A DNA stretch of 62,118 bases, the filler included, from Choristocarpus tenellus KU-1152 (taxonomy: Eukaryota > Protista > Phaeophyceae): the NCBI GenBank assembly GCA_964200185.2. It is 11 parts of 11 records of this genome, joined end to end, with 100 filler letters (N's around TTAATTAATTAA, not from the genome) between each part and the next. Parts side by side here need not be neighbours in the genome. Positions count along the whole stretch, not along the records: positions 42,126 to 50,464 come from CAXNAD020004837.1; 10 more parts are not named here. One strand, given 5' to 3'. The notes below the pieces were generated by a model. That model made no database searches. It was not told where the DNA came from and saw nothing but the letters and a program-made list of their open reading frames with translations. How positions within the stretch are numbered: the first letter of the stretch is position 1; each line of letters begins with the position of its first letter. The position numbers were made by a program, and so were the translations under genes. Shown in pieces: positions 42,126 to 50,700 of this stretch.

Positions 42126-42238
42126 TAGTAGTCAGTGTAGTAGTCAGTGTAGTAGTCAGTGTAGTAGTCAGTGTAGTAGTCAGTGTAGTAGTCAGTGTAG
42201 TAGTCAGTGTAGTAGTCAGTGTAGTAGTCAGTGTAGTA
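42126..42238. repeat. 12-bp tandem repeat (TAGTAGTCAGTG)n at contig start
   Basis: About 9 perfect units. Confidence 0.95.
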
Positions 42239-42811
42239 GCCAACAAAGGCACCGCTACAGAGCCTTGAGATACAACGACTGACAACAAGAGACAAAGATC
42301 ACCATGTTTTTTTTTTTTATTCTTCAACAGTGGCGGCGAGAAGTATTTGTAGTGTCGACAGGCTTTGGTCACCTCTCTTACAAATATTTAAAAAAAAAAT
42401 CAAAACGCCTGCATACATAGATCTTTCACACTTCAAGAGCAAACAACCAACCAATGGCGTGGATCCTGGTTATGAGGCCGGGGGAGCTATGACATTACTG
42501 ATACGCCTGATCAGCAGGGCTCCCACAAACTTGGATTCCACCTAAAGATCTCAATATCTTGCTACAGCACCAGCAAAGGTAACTCCTGATCCTCCACGGG
42601 ACACCTGATCCACTCATCACCAGAGCACAGCAACAAAATCTACTTGAGTGCCTGTCACTAGCATGCCACAAGGGGGCCCTACGAGCAAAGCACCGCCGTT
42701 TGACCCTTAAAGCAACACTCAAAAAAGATCCCCTGCTCCCCTTCCCCTTCCTGGGCCCCACTCAAGCACCTTGCCATATGTCCTCCTCATCACCCCCTTT
42801 TGCAGTCTCAC

Positions 42812-43353
42812 CTGAGCTCCTCGAGGTCCAGCAAAGCCTCTGCCAGTTCCTGAGAGTACACCTCACGCCTACCCCTGACATAACGTACACCAAGTGCTAG
42901 CTTCACACGCCGCTCAAGACTCTTCCCACACTGTCCTTCCCCAGCACCCCCTCCCATAACTTCCCGTTCTTCACTCCACTGCTCATCTCCTTGCCTCAGC
43001 TCTAGGTCATGCTCCTCCTCTGAGGAGACACAAGGGAGCTCCATCTCCACAGAACGGTCTACACTAATGTCTAACGCTCCCACCCCCCCATCCACCTCAT
43101 GTACTCGTGGGGCTGCCTCTGTCTCTCTCCGGCATGTACTCTCAACCATGGTATTTGAACCAGGCAGCGTAGAACATGCTGGCGCTTGTGGTGTTGTAGG
43201 AGTTGTAGGAGTTGTAGGCGGTGGACCTAGGGAGGCGAGCCGTGTAAGCAAGGCCTGACCTTCCAAGGCCAGAATGGAACCCCTCTCTTCTAGTAGGGCA
43301 TCCTCATGGTCCAGGTGGACATCACTGAGCGGCGATGTGTTCATGCATGTTGC

Positions 43354-43391
<38 letters not shown>

Positions 43392-45506
43392 AATAGGGTT
43401 AGGGTTTGCTAGAGGCTCGGGGGTGGCTGTCGTATGGGAGGTGGTTGAAAAAGGTTGAAAGGAGGGCCGGTGTGTGTTCCAAGAAGAACATGGAACATAG
43501 CAACGCCCATGTAGAGAACAATCAGGATGATCTGCATCGTGATCAACACCTAAATGACATGTATGGAGCACTCATCCCCATAGCCTCCAACTGTGTATGG
43601 AAAAATTGATCCACGACCCATGGTTTCTTGTGCTGTCTCTCTCAATTTGAAAATAATTCCACATCCATGGGCTTCATTAATCTCACCTCACCACAAGTGT
43701 AAATACGGAACATTCTTTTGCATCACTTCTGCAAGGTCAGTCAGTGCCATGTCTCCATCATAAGGTTGCAGAAAATACTGTACTCGCTCAAGGCAAATAT
43801 CAAACACCAAGTGCTCTGAAATGCCCTTCCTTTCTGCCTAACCCTAACCCTAAATATTGAACACGGGGTGCACCTTGTCTCCTGTCTGCTTGCCCTAGCA
43901 GTTTTGAGCAGGCGGCGTTGGAATCGTAGAACATAAATACCCAACAGACAGTATCCCAACTTCCTCTGCCACCTGTAGCACAACTCATCCACCAGTGAGC
44001 GCACACCGTGCAAAGAAATACACAAGTGGCGCAGTATGAACATCAGGTGTTTTATAGGGAGGGATGCGGTTTGCATGTCCAAAATAACCAAGATGTTGGG
44101 ATGGTCTGTCCTTGAAAAAGCATAGATTTTAGTCCACACCAAGATTTGCAATGGTCAATCTTTCTCACAGCAATCCAACCTCGCATTGACTTGTAAATAA
44201 TTACACGCAGCCCTTCTCAAGCCTCACTTTGGGAAACTCTCATACCAGAACTGCCCTTTCTTACTTGAAGGAGAAGGTTCTTCCCTCCATGCACTCTACC
44301 ACAACAGGAGTATCCCCAATCAATGCGAACCTACAGTCCGTGATGGGAGACGACTGGTGCAACCACAATCATAGTTCTGCAATAAAATTAGCAACAGCTG
44401 TGCCTCTCTGAAGATGAACAGGTGATGATACACTCTCATATATAGGCAAGCATCATATTTCACCCTCCCAATAAGAACACAGAGGCAAATGCCCCCAAAT
44501 ACCGCCTTGTGTAGATTACCAAAGGATAGATCAGATCGGACCAAGAATCACATTACTAGCTTCAGTCCTTTGCACAAGGTTCATTTTTTGTCCTTCCAAA
44601 TCACTTCGTCTTACCGATTGAATATCCACTTGCCTCCTCCCTTGATCATTATCACCACTCTTTTCCCTCCTTCCCGCAAGCTGGTCATCATGTTCTCGGC
44701 CGTGAGACCAACAACATTGGATAACCACACGGAACTGAGGGGAGGAGGGGGTGCCTCCAGTTCAGGTTCGACCGCTCCCTTGAGCTCGTTAGGGGGTTCG
44801 TAGCCCCAGTTTTCTGACATCAACATGAATAGGCGACAAAAAGGGTGAGAGTAGTGTTGCAAAGAGAGCAGCAGCTTGACGCACAAACAAACGAATCGAT
44901 TGCTCGAGATAGTTGGTGCTTGTAGTACCTGCAAAGAACTTAAGTATTGACATCGAAATTGTATGATTTGACAAACAAGATCAACTTTCTTCCTTCCAAG
45001 TGAGAAAACTTCGAGAAAAAAAAAATGAAAATCGCACCTTGAATCATGTCTCGGAGATGATCTAGCTCTTCAGGGGACGGTCGGAGAGGTCCCACCCATG
45101 CCAACCCATTTGGGAAGCACTAAATAGGTTGTTGGCACGCGAGAGGATGCGTTGGAAATAGATTTTCAGTAACTTGAAGATCGTTCAAGGTTGTGGTGTC
45201 TGCTAGTCTCTTTCGCTCTACAAGGATGAAGGGTCCCTTGGGGAACCGACAACAAAAAAGAACTCTATCGGAAGAAGGAAGAACAATACGTAATTTACGT
45301 CGTTCAGCACTGAGGTCTCTTCTTCCAACGCCAATACTGGAAATACTCCCTGCAAGATACCCGACCTGAGTTGAACCATCTTCGCATCTACGCAGACGAC
45401 CTGGAGGAGAACGACAAACTGAGTTAGGAGGCTCTAAACTTCTGCAAGGTCTCACTGTGGCACTAATGGCTAATATCACAGAGAGGAATTGTAGCACGAA
45501 CGGCAT
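42812..45506 (-). CDS. Putative multi-exon gene of unknown function; candidate exons near 45506-45175, 44928-44614, 43972-43874 and 43344-42812
   Basis: Signal-peptide-like start MPFVLQFLSVILAISATVRP; good splice sites (tttgcag|GTAC, AATCG|gtaaga, CTCAG|gtgaga); phase-compatible join KWIFNR|WQRKLGY; 178-aa acidic ORF. No recognisable domain and the full chain is not resolved. Confidence 0.4.
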
Positions 45507-45593
45507 GGGTGCTCAAAAGCATACAATGTGCAAATAATAGATGTTTAGTGGAAAGTGCCATGTGTGATTCAAACTCTCAAAATCTCAACTTGA

Positions 45594-48047
45594 ATGCAGT
45601 GGCCTTCCAAGTGCTATAGAAAACTCAATTTTATAACACATGATTTTCAACTTGTAGGTGTAGGAAGAAGTACCATGCTTGTCAAGGTTGGATATGCTCC
45701 CAGCCAAATCAATCCAACGGGTTTGACGTTTTCATTAAATCCTGTGGGTTCTCATGTCCGCAGCCCATGGCGTCTGCCCCAACGATGTTGCCGTTCCAAC
45801 ATTACATGCTCTGGCACTAGGGGTGGAATGGGGGAGGATACCAAGGAGGAACAGGAACAAGCTGAGACGCGGGTAGGGGAAGGAGTGCTACGTCAGAGAT
45901 TAATCTTGCGACGCTCACCAGATACGTTTTTGAAAGAAATGCAGTCGTGGAGGATGAGTAGCGACTGGAGCGGAGCAATAAATGCTCTGGATGAAGCCAA
46001 GGCTAGCGGCGCTGAGGTCAACCTCTCCATGTATAACAGCTGCATGAGCTTGATGCTCCATTGCAAAAAATGGAGAATCGCTCTGTCGCTACTCAATCAA
46101 ATGCAATGTGAGGACATTATTCCCGATGTCTTCACCTACAACCAGGTCATGGCAGCATGCAAAGAGGGAGGGCAATGGGAACGTGCTCTATTGCTATTGG
46201 ATGAGATGCAGGCCCAAGGCGTTTCCCCAAATGCACACAATTACAACACGGTTATTGCTGCGTGCGGAGATAGGGGACAATTAGAACGCGCTTTGTTGCT
46301 GATGGATGAAATGCAGGATAAGGGGATTGCCCCTGACACCGTAACCTACAATGTTATTATCAAGGCTTGTGGAGACGGGGAACAATGGGAACGTGCTCTA
46401 TCGATGCTGGATGAAATGAAGGCCAAGGGAATTTCTTTGGATGCCTATACCTACACTGCTGCAATTAGGGCCTGTGGAGATGGGGAACAATGGGAACGTG
46501 CTCTAATGCTGTGGGATGAAATGAAGTTAGCAGGGGTAACGCCAGCTGCTCACACCTTCTCCACAGCTGCGAAGGTCTGCGGGGATGCCGGGCAATGGGA
46601 ACGTGCTCTGTCGCTGCTGGATGAGATGAAATCTATGGGGGCTACCCTAAATTCCCGCATCTACACCACGATCTTGAAGGCCTGTGCAGATGCAGGGAAG
46701 TGGGAGCACGCACTGTCATTGCTTGACGAAATGCAGGCTGAGGGGATTGCCCCCCATGACGTAGCCTACAACATGGTCATGAAGGCTTGTGGGGGTGGAG
46801 GGCAGTGGAAGCAGGTACTGTCACTACTGGATGAGATGAAGGCTAACGGGGTTGCTCCCAATGAATACATCTATACCACGGCCTTGAAGGTCTGTGGGGA
46901 TGCAAGGCAATGGAGACGTGCCATGTCGCTCTTGGACGATATGAAGTCTAACGGGGTTGCTTCAAATGCCTACACTTACACCACGGCAATAAAGGCCTGC
47001 GTAGATGGGAAACAATGGAAATCTGCTCTATCATTGCTGGATGAAATGAAGTCTGAGGGGGTAAATCCAAATGCCTACACCTACACTGTGGCCTTGAAAG
47101 CCTGTAAAGATGGGAGGCAATGGAAACGTGCTCTGTCACTGCTGGATGAGATGGAGTCTATTGGGGTTATTTTGACGTCCCAAATCTACACCATGGTGTT
47201 GAAAGCCTGTGGTGATGCTGGGCAATGGGAACGTGCCATATCACTCCTGGGTGAGATGGAGTTCAAGGGGGTTGCCCCCAATGCCCACAGCTACACCACA
47301 GTCTTGAAGGCCTGTACTGATGCAATGCAATGGGAACGGGCTCTTTCCCTGCTGGATGAAATTACCTCGAAGGGGATTGCAGCAGATAACCACATGTACA
47401 CAATGGCTATGAAGGCCTGTGGAGACGGGGACCAGTGGGAACGTGCTCTGTTGCTGCTGGAAGAAATGCAAGAGAAGGGAATTTCTCCAGACTGTTACAG
47501 TTACACAGTGGTCATGAAAGTTTGTGGAGATGTTGGGCAATGGGAACGTACTTTGTCACTGCTGGCGGAGATGAAGTCTAGGGGGGTTGTTCCACGCGTG
47601 CACACCTACACCACTGCCTTGAAGGCCTGTGGGAATGCTGGACAGTGGGAGCGTGCTCTGGGACTCTTGGATGAAATGGAGGCGGCGGGGATTGCCCCAG
47701 ATGCCCACATCTACACCTCGGCCATGAAGGCTTGCTTGGGTTCTGGGCAGTGGGAACGGTCTCTTTCACTGCTGGAACGACTGAAGATGAAGGGGATTCA
47801 TACCGATACGGTAATCTACAACATGGCCATCAAGGCCTGTGAGAGTGGATTGGATTGGAAGCGTGCTTTGTTGCTGATGGATGAAATGCAAACTGGGGGT
47901 CTTTCCCCAGACCGTTTCACCTACAGGTTTGCCATTTCAGCGTGCAGATTATCAGGTCACTCAGAACCTGCAAAACTTTTGGGTGAGGAGATGAGGGCAA
48001 ACGGATTTTATGATGACCGAATCTCTCCAGAAGTACAGTCAAGATAG
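45594..48047 (+). CDS. P-class pentatricopeptide repeat protein, 19 contiguous 35-aa repeats (46023-48017); true start possibly ATG 45675 or an upstream exon
   Basis: 817-aa ORF with exact 105-bp periodicity, consensus xxTY(T/N)xxxKACGDxGQWERALSLLDEMKxxGVxP(D/N); no E/DYW or SMR C-terminal domain. Confidence 0.96.
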   Translation: MQWPSKCYRKLNFITHDFQLVGVGRSTMLVKVGYAPSQINPTGLTFSLNPVGSHVRSPWRLPQRCCRSNITCSGTRGGMGEDTKEEQEQAETRVGEGVLRQRLILRRSPDTFLKEMQSWRMSSDWSGAINALDEAKASGAEVNLSMYNSCMSLMLHCKKWRIALSLLNQMQCEDIIPDVFTYNQVMAACKEGGQWERALLLLDEMQAQGVSPNAHNYNTVIAACGDRGQLERALLLMDEMQDKGIAPDTVTYNVIIKACGDGEQWERALSMLDEMKAKGISLDAYTYTAAIRACGDGEQWERALMLWDEMKLAGVTPAAHTFSTAAKVCGDAGQWERALSLLDEMKSMGATLNSRIYTTILKACADAGKWEHALSLLDEMQAEGIAPHDVAYNMVMKACGGGGQWKQVLSLLDEMKANGVAPNEYIYTTALKVCGDARQWRRAMSLLDDMKSNGVASNAYTYTTAIKACVDGKQWKSALSLLDEMKSEGVNPNAYTYTVALKACKDGRQWKRALSLLDEMESIGVILTSQIYTMVLKACGDAGQWERAISLLGEMEFKGVAPNAHSYTTVLKACTDAMQWERALSLLDEITSKGIAADNHMYTMAMKACGDGDQWERALLLLEEMQEKGISPDCYSYTVVMKVCGDVGQWERTLSLLAEMKSRGVVPRVHTYTTALKACGNAGQWERALGLLDEMEAAGIAPDAHIYTSAMKACLGSGQWERSLSLLERLKMKGIHTDTVIYNMAIKACESGLDWKRALLLMDEMQTGGLSPDRFTYRFAISACRLSGHSEPAKLLGEEMRANGFYDDRISPEVQSR

Positions 48048-50700
48048 TTGAAGTGAGAGAGCACTTGCTGTGCACCAAACTCTTGCGTGGTGACGTTTTT
48101 GTGGCATAGAAAACTTTCCTTACATATTTCTTGTTTGGAATCCTTTATTAGAGGGAGAGTCACACAGTGACACCAGAGTTTCTTGTATTGTTGCTTGCGT
48201 TTGAGTGAGTTTTGTGCTTCCACTTCTTTGGCATATAGAGGAGTTTGTAGGACATGTGTTGGGAAGAATGCTTTGGTGAGGCTCTAATATTGCTCCCGTG
48301 TATTGAGAAACTGGTAGAGTAGCAGCATCTTCCTGTTATAGAGGATTTTTCTAGACCTTAGTAACAACATATCATTTGCACATCTAGTAGAAGATGCAAA
48401 AGTAGGTGCTTTGATAACTGCTACACTTCTCCATGTGGAAGGATTTGGCACATTTTAGCATGTATGATGTTGGTGTTGGATAGTGTGTGTTTTGGTTTGC
48501 TGTGCTGGCAACTATGTAATAAACTAGTATAACCTGAAGATTACTCTTTCTCTACTACAGGCTGTCGCATCTCCATATCTTGTTGATTGTGTCAATAGTA
48601 CACTGGCATCTTGACATTTCTGACTTGGATAACCCCCATGTTTCGTGGATTGTAGTGCATCAACACCTCATCCCCTGTGAAGACGACTGGCAACCTGTGT
48701 GTGCTCCATATCCACTCAACAGTACAAAGAGCATTCCCAGTGCTCAGTCCATTCAGATACATTGCTACTATGGAGAAGGCTCTGTTGTAATGCTTGTTCT
48801 AGGGATGGATTGGCGTGTAATAAAGTTGGCTCTGCATCGTAACGTGAGAAGTTGATTGCTGCACATCAACTTCTAAGTACCAACTCATGGCAACTATTGT
48901 GTAGCATTGACATGAGCGACTGATCTGGAGAGTGGATCATCATTGTATGCATTTATCTTTGTTTGTAGTAGCTGCTGGAGGAAGGCTGTCACGGGGGACG
49001 TTTAGGAAGTGGAGAATTGGATGGTAGGGTTCAGCATAGAGGAGAAGCCATAATATATGGAGATGAAGACATGCATGCATAGACTCAGGATTGTAGACGG
49101 CTCAGGGTGAGGTTTTGAATTAAGTTGTACAGCAGAGGGGAGATAGGAGAGGCGGGAGGTACCACTTCATGGGTAAAAAAGGGGAAGGAAGGTGTCCTTT
49201 TATCTGTCAAGAGTGAATCAACCGCGGATACTGCCTGCTGTAGAAATGAGGCAGTAAGTGCGGTATTAGTAAAGTGCCCATAGCCCCAAAACAACTTGAT
49301 GTAATGGTCATTCTTCCAGATGAACGGCATTTCGATTTTCAACCCTGGTCGCTATGTTGTTCTTGCCATTTATGATTGTGTCTGCAAGTACATCTCAGAT
49401 TGCCTCTTTCTGTGATGGCTATTGGTGTGTTGACATGATTGAGGTGGTCTATGAGACAGATGCAGGCCTTGAGAATTGCCTAGTTTGCAGGCTTCATTGT
49501 GCTTTATCTTTTGATGTTGAGAAGGGTCTCTCTTGGAGACATGTGCTTTACGATCGCCTGCAGTTCCTCGGTGAGTACCTTTGCATGGTTGCCGACCCTG
49601 CCATGAGGTGTTGGTTGTACCTTTTCTCACTGTGTTGAAGGGGGATTGGACTTCAGGAACAGTAGTTTATTTTTCCTGTCTTGTTGTGTGAGGAGGGGGT
49701 AATATACTCTACAGGATCTGTCCTTATCTTTTCTTTACTATTTTGCTCCACGCAATGTTATTTTGATTCAGTTATTGTCCTTGTGATGCCAATTCTGCGT
49801 TAAAAAAAAATCCTTAGTTCAATTTTCGAAACCATCCCATTGCGCGCAATAATAATTAATACAGTACAAATACTATACACATGCAAGAGTAGAAGATGCC
49901 GAAGGCGTCTGAGAGCGCATCTGACACAGCATGTAGCAGAGGGCATCAAAGTTTGTCAGAAGTACAGGTAGAAGAAGACCACACACCGACAGAGTAACGC
50001 GTCAAGGTGCTCTTGGCTGCTACAACAAGAGCTAGAAAACACAGCTTCGAAAGAGGAGCAATAGGGGTGTTCTTGACCAATCAGCACCAAAATCGATGGT
50101 GCTTTCTCAGATGTTGACTTTCGTGAGTGCAAGCACACGGTGCACAAGAAACTGTAGTATTTTCACAGCATCACACCTCAAACATCTCTCATTCAGTAGT
50201 AGTGGGTGAAAGAACAGAGAACATGTGTGGACCAATCATGAGAGTGTGCTCATCCAGGCCACACAAACAACTCACTTTATAGTACTGGCTCAAAGTTTGT
50301 GGGGGGGGGGGGGTGGCGGCTGTCCATTTTGGGTCAATTTTTCATGTCGCGATTTTTTGGTGATTTGGTTGCATATGTCGGATGGATAATGTAAATGCAC
50401 TTTTCCTGATTTTGGAACAAATGGACACCCTGGTGTGCACCCCCCCCCCCCCCATCCCCCACGTNNNNNNNNNNNNNNNNNNNNNNNNNNNNNNNNNNNN
50501 NNNNNNNNTTAATTAATTAANNNNNNNNNNNNNNNNNNNNNNNNNNNNNNNNNNNNNNNNNNNNGCGCTTTTTCCCGTTGCTGGTCAATAGGGATACCCT
50601 GGCGTAACCCCCCCCCCCCCCCCGCCCCAGATACTTTGGGTCTAGCTCTCATGTCCTCCTCCTTGTCTACCTTCTCATCTCTCTCTCCCCCTTGGGAAAG

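Follow-up and report, generated by a model that had tools for sequence, protein, structure and literature searches.

Maize chloroplast PPR10 is a pentatricopeptide repeat (PPR) protein of the P class: it is built of many tandem 35-residue repeats, whose positions 5 and 35 recognise the RNA. The protein binds a 5′ leader, and it both sets the ends of transcripts and controls translation. On atpH it occupies a site beside the ribosome-binding site and opens the hairpin that encloses the latter; its code does not read as the Shine-Dalgarno sequence. The designer proteins cPPR-Telo1 and dPPR-U10 are synthetic arrays of uniform, gap-free 35-residue repeats with canonical code pairs, and the plant mitoribosomal PPR protein mS83 has been hypothesised to read an AxAAA leader motif in place of rRNA pairing (10.1101/777342; PMC8998825). 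Here we describe a natural PPR gene in a 62,118-nucleotide stretch of DNA (the window, which joins 11 parts of the Choristocarpus tenellus KU-1152 assembly GCA_964200185.2 with filler between them), on the piece at 42126-50464. The gene is nuclear and expressed and encodes a lineage-specific P-class protein, which is probably imported into an organelle and would clamp a single RNA site of about 18 nt there, protecting a transcript end, altering ribosome access, or both.

The designer proteins are the best matches of the window protein in the PDB (cPPR-Telo1, 5orq/5orm, 3.5e-121; dPPR-U10, 5i9f, 6.8e-94), and it shares with them the uniform gap-free repeats and the canonical code pairs. In contrast to these synthetic arrays it is a natural protein with its own helix b consensus, a presequence-like N-terminus and repeats that are 45-70% identical in pairwise comparison, none of them near-identical to its neighbour. 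PPR10 is the best natural match among solved structures (4m59/4m57/4oe1, E = 7e-84) and, like the window protein, is a P-class protein with a long 35-residue array read through residues 5 and 35. PPR10 is no orthologue, its likeness being confined to the level of the repeats, and its own repeats are less uniform. The proposed role of mS83 resembles the one considered below for the window protein in that a PPR protein would read a purine-rich leader motif, but the mS83 motif is short, its role is hypothetical, and we found no specific mS83 similarity in the window protein.

Brown algae, other stramenopiles and dinoflagellates supply the nearest natural relatives by sequence, all of them PPR proteins (26-32% identity, E 3e-126 to 1e-79), among them P0002 and P0003 from Scytosiphon, P0006 from Ectocarpus, P0009 from Symbiodinium and the Logan protein P0001. 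None of these is orthologous to the window protein; gaps interrupt their arrays, and their codes bear no relation to its own. P0001, the best database relative (1057 residues, 32% identity, L001:6001-9174), likewise has an interrupted array with an unrelated code, and its gene lies in a gene-dense Logan contig beside genes for WSC-domain, tetraspanin, PALP and HhH-GPD proteins. The absence of an orthologue is a statement about word-based searches: the full-length search returned none, with a best identity of 32%, and a search with the unique N-terminal region (residues 60-180) gave no match. The exact protein has no record in the contig index, and in a metagenome scan 18 patterns matched, none of which encodes a relative. 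The genome carries further paralogues, a multi-copy PPR family that shares this repeat consensus, as shown by contigs of the three sequencing runs introduced below: several other contigs touching 46164-47236 match only short consensus stretches and then run on into different PPR-coding sequence. The window protein is an ordinary lineage-specific, probably organellar P-class PPR protein, and an unusually regular one.

The repeat array and its recognition code

The piece holds one long open reading frame (ORF) of 817 codons (45594-48047, plus strand), preceded by an in-frame stop at 45591. Its 817-residue product, translated from 45594-48044, carries 19 P-class PPR repeats at 46023-48017, each exactly 35 residues long and without insertion or deletion when parsed in strict 35-residue steps starting at residue 144. 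This parsing reproduces exactly the array given in the preliminary description, including the placement of repeats 12-18 at 47178-47912. Pfam recognises the repeats as PPR_2 (5e-140, 456 bits against a cut-off of 30), PPR_3 (1e-105, 346 bits) and PPR (2e-104, 335 bits), and the Pfam scan of the product gave no other credible domain, the leftover weak matches being helical-repeat or chance matches that overlie the same repeats. No DYW or other catalytic domain was found by Pfam in the product or in the downstream ORFs. All repeats are 35 residues long, with no L or S motifs and no E or DYW domain at the C-terminus, as expected of the P class, and at the DNA level Tandem Repeats Finder detects a 105-nt period over the repeats.

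An AlphaFold2 model computed from the single sequence has a mean pLDDT (predicted local distance difference test) of 76.5. It contains 40 paired helices forming 20 hairpins across residues 109-802, mostly at pLDDT 72-93, preceded by a disordered segment (residues 1-107, pLDDT <50). The 20 hairpins are predicted to correspond to one degenerate capping repeat (residues 109-143) followed by the 19 repeats, the whole forming a single solenoid.

The 5/35 pairs of repeats 1-19 are ND NN ND ND TA SN TH NN TN TN TT TN TD TD TR TD TD ND RD, identical to those listed previously. The register is correct, with the code positions of the query overlying those of cPPR-Telo1 (5orq) in a HMMER alignment (E = 3.5e-121), and in that alignment the position that follows the conserved Tyr and the final one of each repeat match the code positions of the designer protein. 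Canonical pairs (ND, NN, TN, SN, TD), drawn at positions 5 and 35 from the N/T/S plus D/N/S set typical of P-class proteins, occupy 14 of the 19 repeats, and TT can be read in addition to give 15 readable repeats. In assays with designer PPRs, the base bound is U for ND, U or C for NN, A for TN, SN and TT, and G for TD; RD shows no base binding, TA, TH and TR are not reported, and algae and protists have a similar distribution of the pairs (Yan et al. 2019, PMC6468296). Because the repeats are uniform and gap-free and the pairs canonical, a target can be predicted straight from the array, and it would read 5′-U Y U U ? A ? Y A A A A G G ? G G U (-)-3′.

Repeats 12-18 had been read before as AGG(R)GGU, a Shine-Dalgarno-like word. 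That reading is correct; its central purine depends on a TR pair with no reported specificity (PMC6468296). The central position of the word is thus filled by TR although TN, a canonical reader of A, occurs elsewhere in the array. Of the four pairs earlier called non-canonical, TT reads A in the published assays, and TA, TH and TR are the ones without a reported specificity (PMC6468296). The A read by the TT repeat strengthens the run of A ahead of AGG?GGU.

We compared the word with a null in which the order of the same 19 pairs was shuffled 200,000 times. AGGAGGU with at most one wildcard appears in 0.14% of the shuffles, GGAGG in 2.2% and any Shine-Dalgarno-like 5-mer in 8.7%, so that the AGG?GGU word is unlikely under shuffling. 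These figures are upper bounds on the surprise, since attention was drawn to the word post hoc; the originating scan covered PPR arrays of unknown number and the genome holds further PPR paralogues, so that an event of about 1 in 700 is not compelling alone. The pyrimidine- and purine-reading repeats are themselves clustered along the array (5 runs, p = 0.028). An artefact of tandem duplication was considered as the source of the word and ruled out, given that the repeats are only 45-70% identical and none is near-identical to its neighbour. Over their remaining 33 positions, repeats that share a pair resemble one another no more than those that do not (p = 0.14 for protein, 0.31 for DNA).

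Codes were also read from the 120 best homologues with an alignment-based parser, 81 of which gave at least six parsed repeats. The GG[A/?]GG core occurs in none of these 81 and, among the homologues parsed, the word is specific to the code string of the window protein. Within the nuclear piece itself, the predicted motif with up to three mismatches has 2 matches against 1.46 expected, which is chance level.

Gene model, expression and likely destination

Three public runs of one study (X1-X3) cover the stretch, none of them differing from the window at any base; X2 has the character of cDNA and the other two that of genomic DNA. The gene is transcribed, an unbroken X2 contig running over it. 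No X2 contig or depth is present between 45556 and 45658, and M28 (ATG at 45675) is probably the start codon because it is the first ATG inside the X2 contig; the choice is a probable one, as contig ends do not prove transcript ends. At the other end of the gene the X2 assembly graph forks at 47982, with one branch running straight on and the other spliced, the latter represented by a 59-nt contig that joins 47982 to 48656 and skips a 673-nt intron. Retention predominates in X2, with a word depth of 29.6 for the retained form against 13.4 for the spliced form. Two C-terminal isoforms result, which differ only in the capping repeat 19. The searches covered exons and ORFs singly. The GT-AG intron, the spliced cDNA-like contigs and a spliced divergent neighbour mark the gene as nuclear, as the preliminary description proposed.

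Counted from M28, the first 50 residues carry 10 Ser/Thr, 5 Pro and 6 Lys/Arg and are free of Asp and Glu. Averaged over 10 residues, Kyte-Doolittle hydropathy peaks at only 0.8, so there is no hydrophobic core, and no signal peptide is evident in the composition or hydropathy of the N-terminus. These properties suggest a mitochondrial presequence or a primary-plastid transit peptide. The nearest relatives, from brown algae and other stramenopiles, suggest that the organism may have a secondary plastid; if it has one, import into that plastid would need a signal peptide and the mitochondrion is therefore the likelier destination. Pairing between Shine-Dalgarno and anti-Shine-Dalgarno sequences is absent from the characterised mitochondrial translation systems (Waltz et al. 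preprint 10.1101/777342; review PMC8998825). A mitochondrial destination would therefore weaken, though not remove, the case for a Shine-Dalgarno target.

Candidate targets and mode of action

In the mechanism that we consider probable, the protein would be imported into the mitochondrion, or into the plastid if that is a primary one. By the established rule of one repeat per base, residues 5 and 35 of each repeat would there recognise a single base of unpaired RNA, the protein running from N- to C-terminus along the RNA from its 5′ end, and the target would be one site of about 18 nt, similar to 5′-UYUU?A?YAAAAGG?GGU-3′, in an organellar transcript. The action would likely be passive, as in other long P-class proteins: the bound protein may stop exonucleases, thereby fixing and stabilising a transcript end, and it may keep the local RNA single-stranded or covered and so change the access of ribosomes. 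Two points weigh against this account. X2 carries no RNA label in its record, spliced joints and the absence of depth over introns being the grounds for treating it as cDNA, and four of the pairs (TA, TH, TR and RD) give no usable specificity. In such a mechanism the likeness of the purine-rich 3′ half of the site to a ribosome-binding site may be coincidental.

A more specific proposal is that repeats 12-18 sit on the Shine-Dalgarno sequence (AGGAGGU) of one plastid or bacteria-like mitochondrial mRNA, with the N-terminal repeats providing gene specificity through a U/A-rich leader. The code does give AAAAGG?GGU, the shuffling frequency of the word is low, its core is absent from all 81 homologues, and its run of G is not explained by duplication of adjacent repeats (p = 0.14 for protein, 0.31 for DNA). 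In organellar RNA, G-rich words seldom occur except in ribosome-binding sites and structured RNAs. Against this stand the post hoc choice of the word from an unknown number of arrays, a central A that depends on TR when TN is used elsewhere, and the lack of a signal peptide, which in an organism with a secondary plastid points to the mitochondrion, where the characterised systems do without such pairing. The PPR proteins known to activate translation, PPR10 on atpH among them, take a position next to the Shine-Dalgarno sequence and free it rather than read it, and neither the word-based searches nor the metagenome scan found an orthologue in which the word could be followed. We regard this proposal as unlikely on balance. 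It is slightly less likely still that the C-terminal seven repeats read the Shine-Dalgarno word itself, whether as a gene-specific mask of the ribosome-binding site or as a Shine-Dalgarno recogniser in an organelle where the rRNA has lost its anti-Shine-Dalgarno sequence.

The target may instead lie outside mRNA leaders, in an rRNA precursor, an intron, a 3′ end or an antisense transcript, with a role in processing or stabilisation. P-class PPR proteins are known in all of these roles. One example would be the strand complementary to the 3′ end of the small-subunit rRNA, which also reads AAGGAGGU, AGGAGGU being by definition the complement of that rRNA end. We think a target of this class improbable.

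The protein could also be a general substitute for the anti-Shine-Dalgarno sequence, residing on the organellar small subunit and recruiting many mRNAs through a purine-rich leader motif. The precedent is mS83, itself a hypothesis (10.1101/777342; PMC8998825). The purine-rich half of the predicted site would suit this role, and the protein has weak, generic matches to mitoribosomal PPR chains (mL102, 1.8e-34; mS80, 5.7e-26). These matches, however, fall far below those to the designer PPRs and PPR10 and so reflect repeat similarity only, an array of 18 repeats whose 5′ half is specific and pyrimidine-rich would be expected to bind one site rather than a short common motif, and no ribosome-contact region is evident. 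Such a general role is very improbable. Least credible of all is a non-functional or decaying family member, or a role outside the organelles such as binding the RNA of an intracellular bacterium: the lack of a detected orthologue and the multi-copy family would allow it, but the 2.4-kb ORF is intact with 19 repeats in register, the gene is transcribed and its N-terminus is presequence-like, and nothing points to the intracellular invader whose RNA had been offered earlier as a speculative target.

Surroundings of the gene and wider meaning

The features of the gene and of its nearest neighbour are collected below.

Table 1. Positions of the PPR gene features and of the divergent neighbour, counted along the window.
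Feature	Position	Strand	Basis
Presequence-like N-terminus (residues 28-108), predicted disordered	45675..45917	+	Composition; pLDDT <50 for residues 1-107
Degenerate N-terminal capping repeat (residues 109-143; pair LN), predicted	45918..46022	+	Helices 109-122 and 125-137 in model; sequence
Nineteen gap-free 35-residue P-class PPR repeats	46023..48017	+	Pfam, strict parsing, Tandem Repeats Finder, 5orq alignment, AlphaFold2 model
Repeats 12-18, TN TD TD TR TD TD ND, predicted to read A G G ? G G U (Shine-Dalgarno-like core)	47178..47912	+	Parsing, shuffle test, published code
Unbroken cDNA-like X2 contig over PPR gene; left end suggests transcript start near 45659	45659..47982	+	2324 nt, 0 differences
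In-frame upstream ORF extension (residues 1-27), probably untranslated	45594..45674	+	Upstream of X2 contig; in-frame stop 45591
Most likely coding sequence, intron-retaining isoform, 790 residues plus stop	45675..48047	+	First ATG inside X2 transcript contig to stop codon
GT-AG intron inside repeat 19, partly retained	47983..48655	+	GTGAG donor, TTGTAG acceptor; X2 joint 47982/48656
Alternative 3′ exon: 66-residue tail substitutes last 21 residues	48656..48855	+	No Pfam match; translated for reading only
Exons of minus-strand neighbour	45366-45555; 45038-45119; from 44813 downwards	-	X2 contigs
GT-AG introns of minus-strand neighbour	45120-45365; 44814-45037	-	X2 contig skip and loose end

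The divergent neighbour is a spliced minus-strand gene (44611-45555) that lies head to head with the PPR gene, with about 100 bp between the two sets of transcript contigs. An X2 contig omits 45120-45365, whose CT..AC ends correspond to GT..AG on the minus strand and over which X2 depth is zero, and the further loose end of this contig maps to 44784-44813. The product, predicted at about 141 residues, has a hydrophobic, signal-peptide-like start; it has no match in Pfam or Atlas, and an Atlas search with the last exon returned low-score leads only. X2 word depth is 172 over this gene and 67 over the PPR gene. Ten flanking ORFs have no Pfam match, and an Rfam scan of the piece returned only a sub-threshold mir-297 match on an (AT)n tract. 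Simple repeats include a perfect 12-nt microsatellite (TAGTAGTCAGTG) of 9.5 copies at one edge of the piece (42126-42239), an (AT)17 tract at 43356-43389 and a poly-C run near 50441-50455 at the other edge. The most G+C-rich window of the piece (0.56, with a GC skew of -0.43) is at 42626-43344 on the minus strand, where a 178-residue minus-strand ORF (42808-43344) encodes a Pro/Thr repeat without a Pfam match and may be an exon of another gene.

Even if the Shine-Dalgarno likeness of its code is set aside, the window protein is a rare natural PPR array that rivals designer proteins in regularity, with 19 gap-free repeats of which 15 are readable, and this regularity makes its target cleanly predictable from the code, given the organelle genomes. 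A Shine-Dalgarno target is an attractive, testable and as yet unverified prediction, itself doubtful, attached to an ordinary lineage-specific PPR gene. If true, it would make this the first natural helical-repeat protein shown to read a ribosome-binding word directly, and it would offer a simple, code-readable model for the nuclear gating of organellar translation.

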